DNA of 63,854 bases, filler included, from Choristocarpus tenellus KU-1152 (Eukaryota; Protista; Phaeophyceae): assembly GCA_964200185.2 (NCBI GenBank). It is 9 parts of 9 records of this genome, joined end to end, with 100 filler letters (N's around TTAATTAATTAA, not from the genome) between each part and the next. Parts side by side here need not be neighbours in the genome. Positions count along the whole stretch, not along the records: positions 19,816 to 30,429 come from CAXNAD020002832.1; 8 more parts are not named here. One strand, given 5' to 3'. A program made the translations under genes and the position numbers. Of this stretch, positions 19,816 through 30,429 are shown in pieces. Position 1 is the first letter of the stretch. The number at the start of each line of letters is the position of its first letter. The notes beneath the pieces are model-generated. The model had not been told where the DNA came from. It ran no database searches and worked only from the letters and a program-made list of their open reading frames with translations.

Positions 19816-20160
19816 CTGGGGGGGGGGGTGGCAGGCTCAAAGTATCTGGGGGGGGAGGGGGTATCTACACAAGGGTGTTCATTTGAGCTCTGACCAGGAA
19901 AGGTGCACTTGCATTATTCATCCAACACATGCAACCAAATCACCAAAAAATTGCGACATGAAAAAATAGACCCCAAATGGACAGCCGCCACCCCCCCCAG
20001 ATACTTTGAGCCACAGCAGTCCATTCGGGGACCATTTTTCCTTGTCGTGACTTTTGGGTGTTTTGGTTGCATGCGTCGGATAATGTAGGTTCACTTCTCC
20101 TGGTCAGGGACCGAAAGCACCCTGGTGTGACCCTCCCCCCTCCCCCCGGTACTTTAAGAC
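19816..20160. mobile_element. Nested MITE-A pair: intact copy 19834-20012 inside an older, oppositely oriented copy
   Basis: Inner TIRs GGCTCAAAGTATCTGGGGGGG/CCCCCCCAGATACTTTGAGCC. The flanks (ctgggggg..tggca | ..gtccattcgggg...ggtactttaagac) reconstitute a reverse-orientation copy like 63703-63854. Confidence 0.8.
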
Positions 20161-20464
20161 TTTATGGTGAAAATGAGTGAGTAGAATTGGTATTCCTTCT
20201 CCGGGTAAAGAAAGGATAGGGTGATAAGTTAAAAGCTATAGGTTGTATCAGGGATCCTGATAGAGCGATTGTTACTAATTTAGAGCGGATAAACGTTTGT
20301 TGACACAAGATCTCAACCTAATCATATGCTCTCCTCCTGACAGCGCCTGCGGAATGGTGACCGACTCTGGCATAACACTTCAAACGAGTTCGAGGCAGTC
20401 GATGGCTGGTCGCTGGCTCAAGTAGTCAAAGAGAATTGTGACGGAATGGACCTCTTTCCCATCG

Positions 20465-23400
20465 ATGCTTTTACAACGACAATTTGGAGGTTTGTTTTTC
20501 GTCAACCTCTCTCTGCTGGAGGAGGCAAGGGTGCTCATGGGAAAGAGAGGATGGCCTACTTTGGTTGGCAATGTGATGCTTTATGTTGTACTTGAAATAT
20601 GTAAGTAGTTGGATAGCGATATCTACGTGAGTAATGGTAGTGCTCTACAGGAGGTCCAGGCATTCCTTCATACTGACACACAGTTATTATGTGTGGGAAC
20701 ACCATATTTTTGGTGGACGTGTATAGTATCTTTGTTCAATTGTGACCGTGTGAGGATATGCTGTTACTGGTATGTATACTCCAGTTTGTTGACGCTCATC
20801 ACCTGTAACATTTGCACCCACATGCAGTGTATGCAATGACTCGTGCTCCTCCAGTGGAGAGACTATGTTTGACTTGGACAGCTCCTACAACCTCAAGTGG
20901 GAAGGTTTGGGCGATGACAGGGTGACCTTCACAATCACGGTGGGTGCTTATTTCCTTGGGATACAACTCCTAGCCTACTCCTCTACATTCCATCTGACGT
21001 TTAGTTGTTTGTCGCCAAAGGTTCTATTATTATAGCAACTCCTTGGGCCCAGAATCAATTAGAGTGGTCCTTCTGTGACCGCACGGCATTCCTAGGTCTT
21101 GGTATGTAGACCTGTGGGTGAACTGGTTATTTTGCACTGGATAAATTCAAAGCGCTGGAGTTGGTGTATGTGCGACTGTTGCTATGAACAGCAGGCCACA
21201 ACCTTGTTGATCTGCTGTAGATAGATGTGTATAGTCATTCCCCCCAAACGCCTTTGGCTCTGTTGATCTGTCGAATTTGTCGTTTCGTCTGTGTCCCTCC
21301 TACCAGGTGGGTGAAGAAATTTCTACGGGGTTTATTGGCCTTGGGTTTGGTTCCCTGGACATGATGGGGGCTGACATCGTCTTCTGCAAGTTTGATGATA
21401 CAGGTGCTGGGCCAGATTGTTATGATGGCGTAAGCTCTGCCAACAGACAGCCCGATAGGGACATTGATGTGAGGAATATCCAAAACATTCTAGCGCTTCC
21501 ACTACTTCGTAGGGTATACATTTTTACGACTCTGATGGGGTGATCTTCTTCCATTTACTTCACACTCTGAGTAATCAATGTGAGCTGGTACTGCCACGTC
21601 TTCGTCTTTGGGGTTGTCTTGAGTCACGATGATCAGAAAGATATTATTAGAGCTATTTTCCATAGCATAAATGAGCAAATGACTTCAAGGAAAGAGCTAT
21701 AGTATCCTAGAGGGGGGTGCCGTTGGTATTTTTTCTCCCACCACTCTGGAAAGCGATTACGCTTGTGTGGATGAACGTCATATCCTCTTCTACAGTCACA
21801 GCCTCTTGATGGGGGTTGGCTGCATTTCGGGAATAGGAGTGGGGTTGTCAGGCTGATGATGTGATAATCCCCTTCATCCTAGATCGAACCTCCTCTAGGA
21901 TGCAATCATATTAAAATAGTATTCAGTTGGCATGCTACTATATGTTTCTTGTTCATTGACAACCCCTCCGTACTAAGACAAGAAGATGTCAAACTTGCAG
22001 CGCTGTAAGGTACCTTTGAAGATCCTCCTCCAGTGGTATGGGGTCATTTGTACGTTTGATTTACTCCTCAAGCTCCCAGAATGTTTTGAAGTGGAGAACT
22101 TTAGATTAGGATTTACGACTGTGTCGTCTGCATTTGCGTGAGAACAAGTTGCACTGTGTGGTGACAACAGCACCCCCTGCTATCCGGCCACCTCAGTCTT
22201 TGTTCATGACCTTCTCTAGCTCAGGTCACAGTCATAATTTCTTTACCTTATGGATTTCTGCGCTTGTGGGTTGCTGAACACTCGCAGGTGGGTGGAACAG
22301 ACGAGGTAACTGATGTAAAATACTCAGTGCTGAATGGCTTTACCACTGTGAGTTGGACGCGGCCACTCCTAGCTACAGATGATGACCTGGACAATGCTAT
22401 TGAGACATCTGGCACAACAGATGTGAGCCAAAGAAGATTCTCCAAATGGCTGACATCTAAGCTCAATCTTTTATCCCAGATCACACAGACACACCCATCT
22501 CAACAACTCCTTAACTCTTGTGTGATGCCTGTGTCACAGGTGATCGTATCATACAACCCCATCGACATTTCATTTCATGGCATGAATCGTATTGCCAAAG
22601 CAAAAATCGATTTTTCCACGGGGGCAACTGCTGTGACATCTTTTGACTCCAACTCCTCATTTTTTGCTTTCCATGGGGCAGGTCTGTTACCCCACCCAAC
22701 CTCTTCCCCCTCTTCCTCGCCTTTATTGATAGGATAAACCACCCCGTCTAAAAGGGACTCTCCAATACATGCAGGAATCAAGTTGTGAACGTGCCCATTG
22801 AGTGCCCTAAGTCGCGTCTGACATCATTCACTTAACACAAGAATGTTGAATCGGTCTATCAATGTGCAAAAAAAAAATTTAAAAAAATGGATGACTCCCT
22901 TAACAGGGTAGGGGGTGAAGGGCATATCAACAGCCCAATCCTTTTTCCATGCAAACTTCAATAACACTTTAGTATAGTGCAGCATGTGTGCAGTTATTGG
23001 CTCTAAAGCTCTGTACAGTTGCTCGGTGATACTCCAGATCCTCTATTGTACTATAGAACGTACTCTGAAGCGCCCTGAATGGAACTGCTACTATAGATAC
23101 ATCTTAAACCTAAAATCTGAGAGTAGTTTGCATTCATTGAGATTCAGCATTTTATCAGTTCCATAATACTTCAACAACACAGGGTTAAAGAACATTATGG
23201 ACCTAACAACTTTGGACGCACTATGAGGCACATATGGATAGTGGCTGTCTCTCTATATGTGCATCAGATATATACATATAGTACATGTGCTAAGCCTACG
23301 ATGAAACAGAGCTATTCCATATATACTATGTATTTTTTGTGTAGTAGGATGTCATTGTTTGGAGGTCTCCACAAGATTTGTACTTTTGTAGTGAGCAGTC

Positions 23401-26400
23401 CACATACCTGCTAGAGGATGATGGAAGCTCCAGGTAACCAACCCACTTTTTCTTCTTTTAATCACATTCTAACACAGTGATGCTGCTAGCATGGTGCGTG
23501 ATTGGGCCGGCAGGTATTTTTGTGGCACGTTACATGAAGGGCTTACCAATGTGGTTAGAGGTGCACGAAGGCAGGTAGGCATATGGGATGTCTGTTGGCA
23601 GGGTGGTCACTGGACTAGCATAGAGCTGCCATACCTACTTGATCAGGCAATGGAAGCCAACACAACTTTCAATTGGTTCCCTGTTGGATTAATCTACTGC
23701 TTTGGACGTGGCTATGTGGTGTTCGGGCCCTAGTCGGCAGAGATCAATGATGATGCCAAGCCAACCAATTTAATTTTGTCGTTGCCCACTCCACGACATC
23801 TGGTGCTTGCTTTATGCAATTGTCTACACCAAAGCGACAACTAAAAATTATGACTCGACAGTTTTGTTTTTCACTTACAGTAGTGACAACTCTTGGTAGA
23901 GGGCAGTGTTTTGGGGGTCTGTTTTTGTCTTTCGAAGCATGCACCTACTGGATGTTTAATGAACTCTTGTGTAAATTACTTCTCTACAGAAATAACACAC
24001 CAATCGGCCTCTCGCTCATATCCACTTGTTCCCACCCATTCATCAACTGCTGATTATAACTGAAAGCATGGCGTTTGTCGCCGAAACAGTGATTCCTGTA
24101 GCTGCATCCGCCCTGGCAACCACTAAGGTCAGAGGTGAAAGAGGTTGGAGATTAGGGAATGTGGGCGGACTGATCACCTGCAAAACATATATATAAGACC
24201 CCTGTGTACCACTGGGAAATTTAATTAGAAAAATTAAATATTCCAAAAATCATGACTCGTATTCTTTCTTGCACAACCCTTGTCTCCTGTTGAGTATATA
24301 TGAACCTTTCTTTCATTTGCCGACTTACCCCATTGTGAGCATAGCAGATATCATTTACTTTCACCGAAACACAAGATATTAACCACCTCAAACTTGTAGC
24401 CAAACTCGTGATTCGCTCAATCCCCACTCAGGGCCACTTTCACTCATCACATTCCATTATGGGCACCCTGGTAATGGTCTTTGTTGCCTTTCAAGTGGGC
24501 TCAGGCTTCAAGCGCATCAGCTCTCTGAAGAGCAGTCAATATGACATGACAGCCAAGGTATGTGCACAGGTAGTGAGATGATTGAGAGACCTTATAGATA
24601 CATCTTGCGTGTCGGAGTAAATAGGATGACTCCTGTTTCTTGGTTTTGGCTGGTTCTACATTCAAAATTATGTATCGGTGTTCACTTAGAGGTGTGCTTA
24701 GGATTTTTATTTGTCAAGAATTGTGGGTTAATGCGCAAGGTATCCTTGGGCATGTTATGTATCGTGCCTATAATGAGGAGATACATACTCCTAATTTCTT
24801 TGCACGACATTTTCGTATTGGTATGCCTCCTTGTAAGATTCCTCTTGCTTTGTGTTGCTATCTTCATACTTTCCTTCAGATGATGGCAATAGTGCACATG
24901 TGGGGAGGGCGCGCCCTAGCTTTGTTTGCTATTTTCACCTGCTACCACGGTCTGTACATCATTGCCCCAGATGCTACATTTACAGTGGGATCTGCTGGTG
25001 TTACAGGCGAAGATGCTTTTGGACTTCAGATTGGAGGCTTTGAATCGATGCTGAGGTAGGTCTCCCAATACACTCGACAGCCCCAACCTGGCTATCTGGT
25101 CTAGCCCTGACTCTGAAATGTTTCGATGGTCCACTAGTATTGTCGCTGAGCTGCCTCAGCCTCCCTGTGTCCTTAACAGTTTGATCTTGTTGTAAGAAAT
25201 CTAGGACTCTTTAGCCAATAAACCTTACCTATGTTCTAGAGTTCTATAGATACTAAATTTCAGTATGTTGACACACTCATTTCTCTCATCGTGTAAAGGT
25301 ACTACTGGACATACATCAGCTTCCTGGTAGTGGCATTTGTCCTTGGTGAGATGCAACTATACTTTCAGCGCAAGCATGTTCGGATAGACCTGGAGAAGCG
25401 ATTGGATCTACCTTCCTTCAACTTGAAAGTGAGCAAACCTAGCAGGCATTGGCGTCTTGTTCCCCTCCCTTCTAGAAAATTGGTAGTTTACTGAGAATCT
25501 TGAAGCCACCAATGAATCCCCACTGTTCCTCCATCTACTATGCTCCTGTGGACGACATAAAATACCCTGCTGAAGGCTCTAAGTGCTTGTGTGAGAACAG
25601 TAAATGCATTGCCGAGTACAAAATCAAGAGCATTTGTGACACGGCTTTACTCACATTTCAGAAGACCAATCATGTCTTTAGTATCAAGAACAGCATCCCC
25701 ATGTTACTCTATTCTAGGGAAGCTAGCCTTAGAATACATACCCACATATGTCAAGTTGATCATGCTACATTATGATGAGTACTTGTCGTTCTGTTGACAG
25801 AGTCCCTCCAAATTATACTCAGTACATACGAGTTAGTCAGAAGTCATGATAACCTCCTGCATCACTCACCTTGTACAGGAGTTCCATGCGCACGTGCACA
25901 ATGGATCCAAATGGGTGCTGGTAGATGACGCAATTGTGGATCTAGACAAAAACAGCTTCCGTAAGTACACCCCACACTTTAAGTGGTGGCAAGATGCTGT
26001 TCCTGAGAGCCCTTTGAGAGCAGCCTGACAGTTGCACTTTGTGTTTGTGTTGTGGTTGTGAGAGAGTCAATGTAATACTAGTTTTCGTGTTTGAACTCGG
26101 TATGCATCAGATCTATGTCTCAAGGTATGCCTTCAAATATAGTATGTGAAGACATTAATATCAACATTGCTGTTGTTATGGATCTCAGTTGAGGTTCATC
26201 CTGGAGGGGCCCGGGTCCTGCGAGGGTCGATTGGGACAGATATTAAAAAAGAATTGGCTGGGGATGAGGCCGCTGATGCAGACCATTCCCATCGCCACTC
26301 CGCACAGGTGTGTATCTGTGTTGAACCTCGTTGTGTGTGGTGTTGGAGTAGGGATTAGCCAAAGTAAATACACCCTAACGCCTTGAACTTGAGGGGGCAA

Positions 26401-29400
26401 AGGTTTCTATCACAGGTTTTGACACGTTTTTGATTAACTACAGACCTACATCTGCTATATTTCGTTTTCCCGGATTTCTCCTGGAACTACTTGATGTTTG
26501 TGCAGGCAATGAGCGTTGTGGCCAAGATGGTTGTGGGCTACATAAGTGGTTCACGCGATAGCTCGAGTTTAAATAAGGAGGATGGGAATACAGCAGAAGA
26601 AGTACCTTTTGCATACCAGAAATACACCCTTAGTTCAGCTATCCAGGCAAGTCAGCCATTATTATATATTCCCTTCAACCACAATGAGCAAGATCGACAT
26701 ACCTTAAGAATAAAAATTTTGGCTGTTGAGCATGAGCACGCACCTTGAAGTTGAAAGACAGGCTGCTACGTAAGGAATCCTCCAGTTTGTCGTAAGGAAT
26801 AGCGGGTTTAATGTGTTGACATTCTGCACATACCCTCTTGTGGTTGGGTATATACTGGAGAGTGCCTTGGGTGAGAGTGATGACTTCTGAACGTGCTGAC
26901 ATTGTAATCACCTCAGGTGTGTGAAACCGATGATCGGCCTGTCTTTCTTTTTACATTCATGGCACGCAAGGATGAGAAGCAGCCACGGGAGGTCAAGGCA
27001 GGTCAATACATGCGATTCCAGGCCTCGCTCCCAGATGGAACAGTTGTGCAACGGTAAGCCAGAGCCCATATCAGATTTTGATGTTATCATAATCGCAGCA
27101 GTCAAGAGGGGGTGGTGTGGGTGGATCATGACTCAGGGGTCATCATATGTTCTCAGATTGTGAGTTTCTGTTGAATCTCTTATGTACCCCTTCACACGCC
27201 CCAAACCCGAGCATGACTTCAACGGGAAGATCGGCATCTAGCGTGTTTGCATCATCAAGGAAGCGCAGAGGACAACCGTCAACCACCAGCGGGGGAACAA
27301 GTACGATGTTAATGTGACCATCGACTCAGAATGATATCAGCAATGGTACGTCGAAAATTTGCTGCCTGTCCTCAAGGAAAAGATGCCCTGGGTGGAAGCC
27401 CTCGACTTGACAGTGCAGCAGGACGGAGCGGCACCTCATACTGGCAACAAACACCCTATGTAAGCTCAACAAAGCGGGGAAGAGCGATAGGTGGAACATC
27501 AAACTTGAAACGCAGCCGGCACAGTCTCCAGACCTCAGCATCAACGACTTGGGGGTTTTCAATTCGCTGAAAAGCAGAGTTTGGAAGCAGTACTTCGGTA
27601 CTGTGGAGGACATGGCCGCAGGCGTTAGGACGCTTTTCGATGAGCACCCTGCAGAGACTCTTGAGCGAGTGTGGCAGAGCCTGTTCAGTAGGTACAATCA
27701 GGTGTTGACGGCTCTCAGAGGAAACGATTTCGAATTAGAACACAAGGGGGCTGGAAAGTCGGGGTCTATCTGCGGTCGAAAACGTACGTGGCAGTTGACC
27801 AGCATGTATACGCCGTGGCGGAGGAGTGGTGATGTGATGGGGAGGAAAGCGAAGAAGTTTGAGGTATATGCAGAAAACTGCTAGGAATCCATTCCAACAA
27901 ACCGTTTTCAAATCTGAAACATGCTCGAAACGTTATGAATAAGATTGACCAGACTTAAGGGACAGAGGAGTATGTAACCGATAGCATTCGGGACCATTCA
28001 CACATGCAGTGTTTACAAGGATGTAGACGAATTTCGTTCTAACTATCGATATATATATATTAGGTTTGAGAGTTCCAGCAACCCTTCATTGGCTGCACTC
28101 TGATGAGGGAGTGTACAATATAGGAGAATAGTAAGGTGTACACTATTTTGTGTATTGAAAATATGGTATTTGATTGTGTCCATTTGATGTAACTAATGAG
28201 ATAGTACATCTGGATTATGTCCAAAATGTTTAAGAGTAGGTAAAATGTGTACGTTATGAAAAGGATTGTCTGGAACAAGGACACTGACATCTCCAAACAA
28301 AAATGATAGCAAAATTACATCAAAATCGCAACATTAGATTTTGGCGCCTAAATGGACGCGGCTCTACCCTCTTAGATACTTTGACCCTACCTTCCAAGGT
28401 AAATTACACAACCCTAGATCTCTGCATGCTTGCCTTCTATCGTCCCCATTGCTTTCTCAGATCTTATCAAATGATTGATATGGTTCAACATGGAGAGCAG
28501 AGAGGTTACTGCTTTGCTATTCGTCTCTATCCAGATGGACTCATGTCTGGTGTCCTTAGGGACCTCACACACGGATCAAAAATGCGAATGATTGTAGGTG
28601 CTGTTGGTGATCGCCTTTTGGTGTACCATATTTCTGCTTGTGAGTGCTTTTCTGACCATTTATGGAGACATAGAACCTTCAAGTTGAGATTCTGTATATT
28701 GTACCTCTACTTTGTTTTTGTCCTGTTCTATTTTACTGATTGCAGTAAGCCGTTGCGAAGTAATGAACCCATCGCCAGTAAATGCAATACTTCTGTCCCC
28801 TTTAACTATTGAACATAACCACCTATTGCACCGCTTGTAGGGACCCTTCAACTTGTCAGGGGTACAAATCCCTCCTTTTGATGACTACATTTACATGTTT
28901 GCTGGAGGGACTGGTGTATCTCCAATGCTGCAGGTGATAAACCAATACTTGGGAAGTCCAAAGAAGGTGACAGATGTACAGGATAGTACAAGTGAGGATG
29001 GATCAAAACACGCTCCTGAAAAGGCTGCTGGACAATCAAGTAGCAAGGGTGGTCGTGCGAACAAGGAAAGATCTCTTTTGCTAGGAGGCGATGGTGACAA
29101 ACATTTCCCTTGGCCACCGAATGGAACCGGCACTGGCAAGCTGTGAGTCGAGCTATATTGGAAGAGTTGCTGTTATGCTGGACCCAAAGTATCTGGGGGA
29201 GGGGGGGGGGGCTACACCAGGGTGTCAATTTGAGACATAACCAGGAAACATGCACTTACATTATCCATCCTAGATGTGTGCAACCAAATCACACAAAAAT
29301 CGCGACATGAACAAATTGACCCCAAGTGGACAGCTGCCAACCCCCCCCCCAGATACTTTGAGCTCCGTGTGTTGGTGTATTACATCTTGTTCATGACACA

Positions 29401-30401
29401 CGGCTTACTAATACACAATACATGCAAATAGCTTGAACGCATTGGTTCTTTACCAGTAGAAGAAGATCCAAATATTGCTTCCTTGCGGTCAATTGCATGG
29501 TGTACCGAGAGGTGTGAAGCTCATTCTGAGGTAATGGGTCATCAATTTGCCTGTTTTGCTGTATCAGGGTCCTGGTGTGGCAGGCAAAATCTGAGTCGGA
29601 GCTCTACCTCAGAGACCGACTAGAAAGCTGGCGAGATCACAGTGGTGGCCGATTCTCGTTTGTCTTCCTTGTGCAGGTTTGCGATTATGAGCTCCGATTA
29701 TACCTCTTGCAGTTTGGGGAGTTTGGCTGCTGCATAGGTAGACATCTAGTCCTCAATGTGAGGGGTCAAAATAGTGATTGTCTGGAGACGGGCACTATAG
29801 CAATCTTTGCAGCAGTGATCAAGATTTAAATCCTACGCCCTATTAGACTGCACACATATGTACTGATACGCGATTACGTGGTTCAGTTATATGGAGTTCT
29901 TGGAGATCCATCATTGACTAGTTATATATTTTTGGCTTCATGTTAATGGTAGATTTGTTGCTAGTTGGAATTGATTTTACCTCAAGGGAAAATATCATTA
30001 GTAGCAATCACCTAGTGGAAATATTTCATATTACATTCTGCAATAATGAGCAGGTAACTATATGCAGCAGATTTAATCGTTTGCAACCCTCTCACCTCCA
30101 TCCTGTTCACTCACACATATTGCAAGCTCTTCCCCCATCGGTTCTGCAGCAACCTAAGAAAGAGAGGAGCCTTCGAGGGCGGCATCTAAATTATGGTTCT
30201 GCCTGGGCCCATCGTGGTAGTTCTCGTTCGCGTTCACGCTCACGCTCAAGAGGCGCTTCACTTCAGTCACGAAGGTCGAAGAATCTCATGGACTCTGGGA
30301 ACCAGGACAAGAAGAATGTTGAGCCTGACAATATCAACCATGGAGTGGACAAGACAGCAAAAACTGCTGTTGTTGGCAATACCGGAGTGGTTGATACTCA
30401 G
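20465..30401 (+). CDS. DOMON - cytochrome b561 - cytochrome b5 - FAD/NAD(P)H oxidoreductase (b5-reductase/FNR-like) fusion protein; 3' end lost in linker
   Basis: Exons from 20828 (DSSYNLKWE), 21307 (GFIGLGFGSLDMMGADIV), 22288, 22540 (SFHG..AFHGA), 23478 (MLLAW..ARY..WLEVHE), ~24067, 24432 (SHSIMG), 24880 (VHMWGGR), 25299, 25879 (KWVLVDDAIVDL), 26189 (HPGG..HRHS), 26506-26646, 26917-27053 (GQY..VQR), 28461-28593 (SY..IRLYPDGLMS), 28841-29141 (GP..FAGGTGVSPMLQ), 29568, ~30150-30401. First exon (signal-peptide-like MLLQRQFGGLFFV..) is uncertain because its phase does not join cleanly. Confidence 0.9.
27170..27972 (+). mobile_element. Mariner-like (plant-type DD39D/Stowaway-related) transposase pseudogene, 3' half with right TIR, inside an intron
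   Basis: FNGKIGI, VQQDGAAPH, QPAQSPDLSINDLGVFNSLKS, LERVWQSL..V....GNDF with stops; ends GGGACAGAGGAG|TA (27959-27972). Confidence 0.85.
28272..28387. mobile_element. MITE-B, truncated
   Basis: ...AAATGGACGCGGCTCTACCCTCTTAGATACTTTGACCC matches the family B end. Confidence 0.8.
29181..29364. mobile_element. MITE-A, full length, intronic
   Basis: GACCCAAAGTATCTGGGGG ... CCCCCAGATACTTTGAGCT; internal sequence matches 19834-20012. Confidence 0.9.
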
Positions 30402-30405
30402 GTAA

Positions 30406-30429
30406 GACCCAAAGTATCTGGGAGGGGGG
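30406..30429. mobile_element. MITE-A terminus directly after a splice donor, truncated by linker
   Basis: CAG|GTAA-GACCCAAAGTATCTGGGAGGGGG. Confidence 0.75.

Follow-up and report, generated by a model that had tools for sequence, protein, structure and literature searches.

The stretch of DNA analysed here, referred to as the window, comprises 63,854 nucleotides (nt), filler included, from the brown alga Choristocarpus tenellus KU-1152, in nine parts joined end to end. The part taken from CAXNAD020002832.1 (19,816 to 30,429) contains the middle of a gene for a trans-membrane redox protein. When the chain is rebuilt from sequence, 17 exons between 20828 and 30401 form a single frame of 805 codons with zero stops, and one further exon extends the in-phase, stop-free chain to 18 exons (20344-30401). 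Introns of the 20828-30401 chain are all GT-AG except for one GC-AG intron after 26646. The exons are listed below, with identities to two brown algal relatives, C. tenellus P0003 and Discosporangium mesarthrocarpum P0001, and with splice joints from X3, a public sequencing run that behaves as RNA.

20344..20489, +: coding exon, last 48 residues of an animal-type heme peroxidase domain (PF03098); 85% identity to P0003 470-517 and 71% to P0001 459-503, AG/GT borders as in both relatives, phase fits the next exon
20828..20939, +: linker and first DOMON strands; relatives' alignment, shared borders
21307..21468, +: DOMON with the heme-ligand Met; Pfam DOMON E 0.002, Met invariant in nine relatives
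22288..22422, +: DOMON; Pfam, relatives, shared borders
22540..22681, +: His that ligates the DOMON heme, and b561 His1 where helix 1 begins; motifs, relatives' alignment
23478..23574, +: b561 helix 1, cytosolic loop, His2; motifs, relatives' alignment
24067..24127, +: b561 helix 2; 95% identity to P0003
24432..24557, +: b561 His3, helix 3; Pfam Cytochrom_B561 E 0.006, joint to the next exon in X3
24880..25055, +: b561 His4, helix 4, outer loop; within X3 contig 17, alignment
25299..25428, +: fifth membrane helix and start of cytochrome b5; within X3 contig 17, helix in structure model
25879..25960, +: cytochrome b5, first part; X3 joints 25428>25879 and 25960>26189
26189..26307, +: cytochrome b5, both His ligands; Pfam Cyt-b5, ligands invariant
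26506..26646, +: end of b5, linker, start of the flavin adenine dinucleotide (FAD) domain, GC donor; X3 joint
26917..27053, +: FAD-binding barrel; 85% identity to P0003 and 80% to P0001, X3 joint over the 1407-nt intron
28461..28593, +: FAD-binding motifs (R-x-Y with Gln for the usual Thr/Ser; G-x-M-S); Pfam FAD_binding_6 E 0.001
28841..29142, +: G-P hinge, G-G-T-G nucleotide loop, low-complexity insert; Pfam NAD_binding_1 E 0.008, X3 contig 20 starts at 28841
29568..29676, +: NAD(P)H domain strands 2-3; 86% identity to P0003, X3 joints on both sides
30150..30401, +: Arg/Ser-rich insert in the NAD(P)H domain, donor at its end; X3 joint 29676>30150

Together with its relatives, this chain almost certainly defines a membrane protein of about 1,450-1,500 residues with the order signal peptide, heme peroxidase (of the peroxidase-cyclooxygenase superfamily), DOMON, b561, b5 and FAD/NAD(P)H. 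A preliminary description of the locus had proposed one phase-consistent chain with DOMON, b561, b5 and reductase modules. That chain stands, since all 17 exons share one frame, each module has a Pfam match, and the named motifs (heme ligands, b561 His, b5, and those of the reductase) are all found in the order given. The four modules are thus present, but a fifth, the N-terminal heme peroxidase, and both ends of the gene had been overlooked. The four-module form it envisaged exists elsewhere, in ciliates and in the marine metagenome protein P0004; the window gene is of the longer form.

The ends had been placed at 20465 and 30401. Read from 20465, the frame reaches the donor at 20600 in phase 1, which does not fit the phase 2 required by the acceptor at 20828. 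The true upstream exon, 20344-20489, is in another frame. Start codons at 20465 or 20537, with a signal peptide before DOMON, were rejected; neither fits in phase at the strong donor 20600 or is matched in the relatives, and the other frame matches the peroxidase tail. An in-frame TGA at 20593 was considered as selenocysteine and dismissed because the exon has already ended at 20489. On the right, 30401 is a splice donor and the gene continues past the edge of the piece. The piece does not reach the C-G motif that closes the NAD(P)H domain; in Choristocarpus and Discosporangium this motif is found further downstream, and a gene ending without it is not supported, as later exons of both relatives carry it. 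In the Discosporangium locus about three more exons follow the counterpart of 30150-30401. The gene therefore exceeds the piece at both edges, and is truncated here because both ends of the piece sit inside copies of one high-copy repeat. Two internal borders were also discarded: a start of exon 7 at 23990, which meets a stop codon (the correct acceptor is 24067), and a start of the last exon at 30127, which is excluded by the RNA joint to 30150.

The window gene was searched exon by exon, and the joined sequence served only for phase, hydropathy and motif positions; one query (22288-22680) ran through a 117-nt in-frame intron. Each domain was matched in separate exons (DOMON, E 0.002 and 0.05; Cytochrom_B561, 0.006; Cyt-b5, 0.03; FAD_binding_6, 0.001; NAD_binding_1, 0.008). 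These scores fall under the curated cut-offs because the exons are short. The full layout is seen in the relatives, which carry a signal peptide, a peroxidase, DOMON, a five-helix b561, b5, and a b5-reductase-type FAD/NAD(P)H module. Discosporangium P0001 (1,484 residues) was found with a query across the DOMON/b561 border, and its Pfam order is An_peroxidase (315 bits), DOMON, b561, b5, FAD and NAD. Across the full-length relatives the An_peroxidase domain scores 315-428 bits. Exon 20344-20489 is 65-71% identical to the end of the Discosporangium peroxidase, with the same borders in both relatives' loci, and the other exon borders of the window are likewise the same in the two loci.

The closest relative is Choristocarpus P0003, whose exons are 53-95% identical with the same intron borders. 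Introns of the two loci are alignable at 65-79% and have one small repeat in common, and the two genes may be paralogues. Synonymous divergence (dS) is about 0.5-0.75. The ratio of nonsynonymous to synonymous divergence (dN/dS) is 0.10 for the peroxidase tail, 0.23 for DOMON, 0.26 for b561, 0.11 for b5, 0.13 for FAD and 0.38 for NAD, the last with its insert included. The catalytic modules are under purifying selection. The public Choristocarpus tenellus model (1,341 residues) ends early by reading into an intron, and an unannotated exon with G-R-I and C-G-R follows (L006 25422-25880).

Three public runs, X1 to X3, cover the stretch and none is recorded as RNA; the comparison spanned 24432-30425. 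X1 and X2 behave as DNA and give overlapping contigs over the b561-b5-FAD region. In X3 the intron bins drop to zero and contigs are spliced at the predicted borders, which is the behaviour of RNA. A 907-nt X3 contig runs from 24892 to about 28594 with six introns removed, joining the last b561 His exon via b5 to the FAD-binding exons. Further joints among the rows listed are 24557>24880, 29142>29568 and 29676>30150 (28593>28841 is not among them). The GC-AG intron (26646-26647) is used in X3, and the P0003 locus has a GT donor at the same intron. A contig is not a single molecule, and contig depth is a poor gauge of level. The preliminary description had named a transcript end between the b561 and b5 exons as the sign of two genes; there is no break there, and the 907-nt contig spans the junction.

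Other X3 contigs depart from this pattern. Those at 28565-28870 and 29647-30174 retain introns 15 and 17, at depths of 60 and 80 versus 220-290 for spliced contigs. Another covers 29965-30002 and departs from the genomic sequence after 30002, with at least 255 letters absent from the piece. This segment could be an alternative 36-nt exon joined downstream, although the visible letters are unlike the expected next exon of either relative and contain an early in-frame stop.

In an alignment of nine proteins, from brown algae to chytrids, the DOMON Met, the b561 His residues and both b5 His are kept. The exceptions are b561 His2, which falls in an alignment gap of the Tribonema model, and the DOMON His of P0004, which is one column off. 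The b561 His residues sit on four separate, consecutive helices of five in total, in b561 style. Structure models were built from database relatives rather than from the window protein. A DOMON-b561-b5 model of the Choristocarpus relative (mean predicted local distance difference test score, pLDDT, 73) has five membrane helices and matches the dopamine beta-hydroxylase DOMON, the cellobiose dehydrogenase cytochrome, cytochrome b561 (TM-score about 0.6 by target; matches include 4O6Y/4O7G) and cytochrome b5. No NOX was among the 50 structural matches listed for it. For the reductase half, modelled from Discosporangium, the best matches are b5 reductases and the b5 reductase domain of nitrate reductase (E 1e-10). 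An initial model of 965 residues, with a mean pLDDT of 51, was not good enough to read distances from.

Because the relatives have signal peptides, five helices, and basic inner and acidic outer loops, the peroxidase and DOMON are predicted to lie outside (wall or lumen) and b5 and the reductase in the cytosol. In P0003 the inner loops are basic, the outer loop is acidic, and glycosylation sequons are mostly in the outer part. His1 and His3 of b561 are predicted to face outward and His2 and His4 inward, as in HYP1 (PMC10784544). The predicted topology supports the earlier proposal that b5 and the reductase lie opposite DOMON. In HYP1 the modelled ascorbate site is an Arg/Asn pair, seven and three residues before His4 (PMC10784544). 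This pair is kept neither in exon 24880-25055 nor in the exon before it. The reductase motifs R-x-Y, G-x-M-S, G-P and G-G-T-G are all in the window, with Gln at the Thr/Ser position, and long low-complexity inserts divide the nucleotide-binding fold.

The peroxidase domains of both brown algal relatives, Cafeteria and Sorochytrium keep the distal Gln, His and Arg and the proximal His, and the proximal Asn is also intact in both brown algal relatives and Sorochytrium. All five catalytic residues are found in P0003, P0001 and P0085, with partial loss in P0028, P0033 and P0086. Between the two brown algal proteins the domain is 61% identical. Halogenating peroxidases ester-link their heme through an Asp and a Glu (PMC4420034). 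These positions, which lie outside the window exon, are Ala and Asn in P0001 and P0003. Among solved structures, the domain comes closest to a bacterial-type lactoperoxidase-like enzyme and to Dictyostelium peroxinectin A (6ERC), at E ~1e-51. In a tree of 25 peroxidase domains, a 97/97 branch places seven fused proteins and one DUOX2 on one side and the bacterial and animal peroxidases on the other. The tree has a single long DUOX row, three long-branch rows and a root that is not known, and leaves out Dictyostelium peroxidase A; the tie to DUOX that it suggests is a lead only.

Proteins with this chain are also found in Tribonema minus, Cafeteria roenbergensis, two Geranomyces species and Sorochytrium milnesiophthora, so that it spans algae, protists, chytrids and a blastoclad. 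Counting all sources, P0065, a single intron-free reading frame from a sequencing run, and seven other proteins have the same module order. An Atlas cluster of 179 members, possibly the query's own, carries An_peroxidase in 100%, Cyt-b5 in 97% and DOMON in 88%. A second cluster (n=54, mostly ciliate) has b5, DOMON and FAD domains, with peroxidase not listed. Metagenome protein P0004 has the four-module form, with no upstream peroxidase match and a signal-peptide-like stretch before DOMON. Word-based homologue searches, which scored 8000 candidates, missed known members (Geranomyces in one search); they are incomplete, and the true range is therefore wider than the members listed.

Related partial or variant forms were also noted. 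An intron-free DOMON-b561-b5-reductase gene of a marine eukaryote (L002 930-3704, L003 1104-3878) has a called start that is internal, preceded by an in-frame upstream Met and a signal-peptide-like stretch. The metagenome protein P0002 has five tandem DOMON domains followed by b561-like helices. A further Atlas cluster groups 104 short proteins of 328 aa, from Mucoromycota where the source is known, that carry b561 and b5 only, a partial form of the wire.

The architecture is a patchy, multi-lineage family that sits in databases under names such as 'hypothetical protein'. The preliminary description knew of no functional study of it, allowed for unstudied homologues in databases, and named a common and already characterised architecture among its refuting outcomes. 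The architecture proves patchy yet widespread in databases, though uncharacterised; none of the other refuting outcomes was borne out. Literature searches, with most subscription journals outside their coverage, returned no published description of the peroxidase-DOMON-b561-b5-reductase order. It is not mentioned in the passages retrieved from an FRD survey (PMC3591440), a peroxidase review (PMC4420034) and a nitrate-pathway paper (PMC6400420). The parts are known and the sequences public; the combination appears undescribed. Ciliate DOMON-b561-b5 architectures may be among those listed by Iyer et al. 2007 in their work on DOMON domains.

The nearest Atlas shapes are CYBDOMs (HYP1/CRR of Arabidopsis, FRRS1/SDR2 of animals, TEF22 of Chlamydomonas), which share the DOMON Met/His ligands followed by a five-helix b561. 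The b561 His spacing is 32/30/41 here versus 34/33/36 in HYP1 (PMC10784544). Ascorbate is the electron donor of CYBDOMs, which lack b5, reductase and peroxidase modules; the modelled ascorbate pair is not kept here. On its domain order, the protein is best read as a CYBDOM extended at both ends. Its cytosolic arm resembles the b5/b5 reductase arm of nitrate reductase and CYB5R4, in which FAD and NAD(P)H domains come after b5, but here the arm lies under a membrane cytochrome rather than a molybdenum domain, and long inserts interrupt the nucleotide-binding half. The eFREs of Naegleria and oomycetes are similar in having an outer DOMON, membrane hemes and a cytosolic FAD/NADPH module in one chain, but differ in an FRD core and in lacking b5 and peroxidase (PMC3591440). 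Peroxidockerin-type (family 6) peroxidases and Dictyostelium peroxidase A share the catalytic Gln/His/Arg and the proximal His/Asn; they are soluble, and the brown algal domain lacks both ester-forming residues.

DUOX belongs to family 7 of the peroxidase-cyclooxygenase superfamily and to the NOX/FRD superfamily. The present protein resembles it in an outer PF03098 domain, a two-heme membrane conduit and a cytosolic FAD/NAD(P)H module in one chain. Instead of FRD, the membrane domain here is b561, whose four His lie on four separate helices; DOMON and b5 hemes are added, and the reductase is of the b5 reductase type. Pfam scans of the full-length relatives found no EF-hand family, and DOMON follows the peroxidase directly, unlike in DUOX. 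Several members keep the peroxidase heme ligands. Human DUOX1 is without them and binds no heme there (PMC7794343). Membership in NOX/FRD was rejected, as PF01794 (the ferric reductase membrane domain, in which the four His are paired on two helices) has no match in any full-length relative in Pfam scans, the His lie on four helices, and the structural match is to b561. This bears out the earlier suggestion of a b561-type core independent of the NOX/FRE family. Judged from its sequence, the protein is a convergent analogue of DUOX and not a DUOX, because its membrane domain is b561 rather than NOX/FRD.

The likely arrangement, judged from topology and known families, has the peroxidase and DOMON outside, b5 and the reductase in the cytosol, and a fused b5/b5 reductase arm that would replace the ascorbate feeding ordinary CYBDOMs. 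Electrons would pass from NAD(P)H to FAD, the b5 heme, the inner b561 heme, the outer b561 heme and the DOMON heme. As the peroxidase precedes DOMON, electrons probably travel on past the DOMON heme, and the protein no longer reads most obviously as a plain ferric-chelate reductase. The hemes of b561 and Met/His DOMON are generally six-coordinate, without an open site, and of positive potential, and are poor reducers of O2 but suited to reducing peroxidase compounds I and II, Fe(III) chelates or quinones. The DOMON heme could then give single electrons to oxidised intermediates of the attached peroxidase, and the whole chain would act as an NAD(P)H-fed trans-membrane peroxide reductase controlling H2O2 at the cell surface. 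Reduction of Fe(III) or quinone, as in CYBDOMs, would still be possible. We rank this outward peroxide reductase serving its own peroxidase first among the readings, but offer it tentatively, as a proposal that may well be wrong, with its last step a guess. Several observations weigh against it. The peroxidase of Geranomyces has lost its distal His, and that of the Tribonema model has lost the proximal His as well. The wire exists without a peroxidase in ciliates and a marine protist, and this, with the decayed peroxidases in some members, means that coupling is not obligatory. At the flavin-motif position where Thr/Ser is usual, the window and Choristocarpus carry Gln/His and Discosporangium the canonical Thr, and the C-G-P motif is C-G-R in both brown algal relatives, in an unannotated exon in Choristocarpus. 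For the window gene, both the active site of the peroxidase and the final strands of the NAD(P)H domain lie beyond the piece and are inferred from relatives.

Could the chain instead make peroxide? In the main rival reading, a convergent DUOX with a working peroxidase would reduce O2 outside, directly or via a quinone or iron shuttle, and use the H2O2 for halide oxidation or the cross-linking of wall phenolics. The DUOX-like functional layout (PMC3591440), the catalytic residues kept in brown algae, Cafeteria and Sorochytrium, the lactoperoxidase-like and peroxinectin A relatives, and the grouping of the family's peroxidases with DUOX2 at the 97/97 branch of the 25-row tree all speak for it. 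Set against this, the ester-forming Asp/Glu (PMC4420034) are Ala/Asn in the brown algal proteins, and the DUOX row is a long branch, alone. This reading is possible and, in our judgement, unlikely. We know of no O2-reducing site on b561 or DOMON hemes, which also counts against it. A bolder version, which we hold to be a little less probable still, is a second invention of dual oxidase from b561, b5 and b5-reductase parts, its catalytic peroxidase sister to the dead animal DUOX domain. If true, one chain lying outside the NOX family would both produce and consume extracellular H2O2 in stramenopiles and zoosporic fungi, and would serve as a living model of the past role of the DUOX domain.

A self-sufficient ferric or cupric chelate or quinone reductase, with the peroxidase separate or structural, would fit the CYBDOMs, which reduce Fe(III) and Cu(II) chelates on the outer side (PMC10784544), the peroxidase-less form in ciliates and a marine protist, the decayed peroxidase of some members, and the DOMON-bearing FRD-type ferric reductases of oomycetes and Naegleria (PMC3591440). 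We find it doubtful, since the peroxidase is the best-kept module (tail dN/dS 0.10; 61% brown algal identity) and is in all 179 cluster members. There is a slim chance that the reductase arm is weak or uncoupled and serves in regulation or as a scaffold, with ascorbate or a separate reductase feeding b5/b561. The Gln for Thr/Ser, C-G-R for C-G-P, the fold-splitting inserts and the partly unspliced introns 15 and 17 would accord with this; the FAD exons, however, are under constraint as strong as b5 (dN/dS 0.13), R-x-Y, G-x-M-S, G-P and G-G-T-G are kept, and Discosporangium has the canonical Thr. Finally, the locus could comprise two or more adjoining genes or an assembly chimera, given that a contig is not one molecule, that repeats bound the piece and that the RNA comparison starts at 24432. 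This is largely refuted and extremely improbable: spliced in-frame joints lie at one depth, DNA contigs overlap in two runs, the same exon borders occur in two other brown algal loci, and P0065 and P0004 are intron-free single frames.

The piece also carries repeats. Within the intron 27053-28461, positions 27170-27975 hold decayed mariner-type transposase fragments in three frames, which end in a Stowaway/mariner-like terminal repeat and a following TA (about 27959-27971). The corresponding intron of Choristocarpus measures only some 250 nt. A 635-nt X3 contig lies over 27229-27863, and X1 and X2 hold a second, diverged copy of the transposase stretch. Copies of a miniature element, G-rich with inverted repeats and about 180 nt long, lie at 19834-20012, 29181-29363 and 30406-30429 and reach very high depth in the DNA runs; both ends of the piece fall within this element, and a second, nested-looking arm pair spans 19850-20147. 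A very high-copy small repeat at 28220-28388 has three relatives (79-85% identity) at other positions of the Choristocarpus locus L006.

To our knowledge, all characterised eukaryotic NAD(P)H-driven trans-plasma-membrane oxidoreductases are built on an FRD/NOX core, and ascorbate is the donor of every b561 protein characterised so far. The family described here would link a b561 core with NAD(P)H within a single chain, capped by a heme peroxidase that, unlike that of DUOX, has its catalytic residues. Gene surveys limited to NOX/FRE overlook it. Natural variants with an intact, a decayed or no peroxidase, together with the single polypeptide, make it testable why a peroxidase sits on a membrane conduit, as in DUOX. 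Whatever the last step may be, peroxide removal, peroxide production or iron reduction, the family would represent an unrecorded surface redox route in algae, flagellates and zoosporic fungi.

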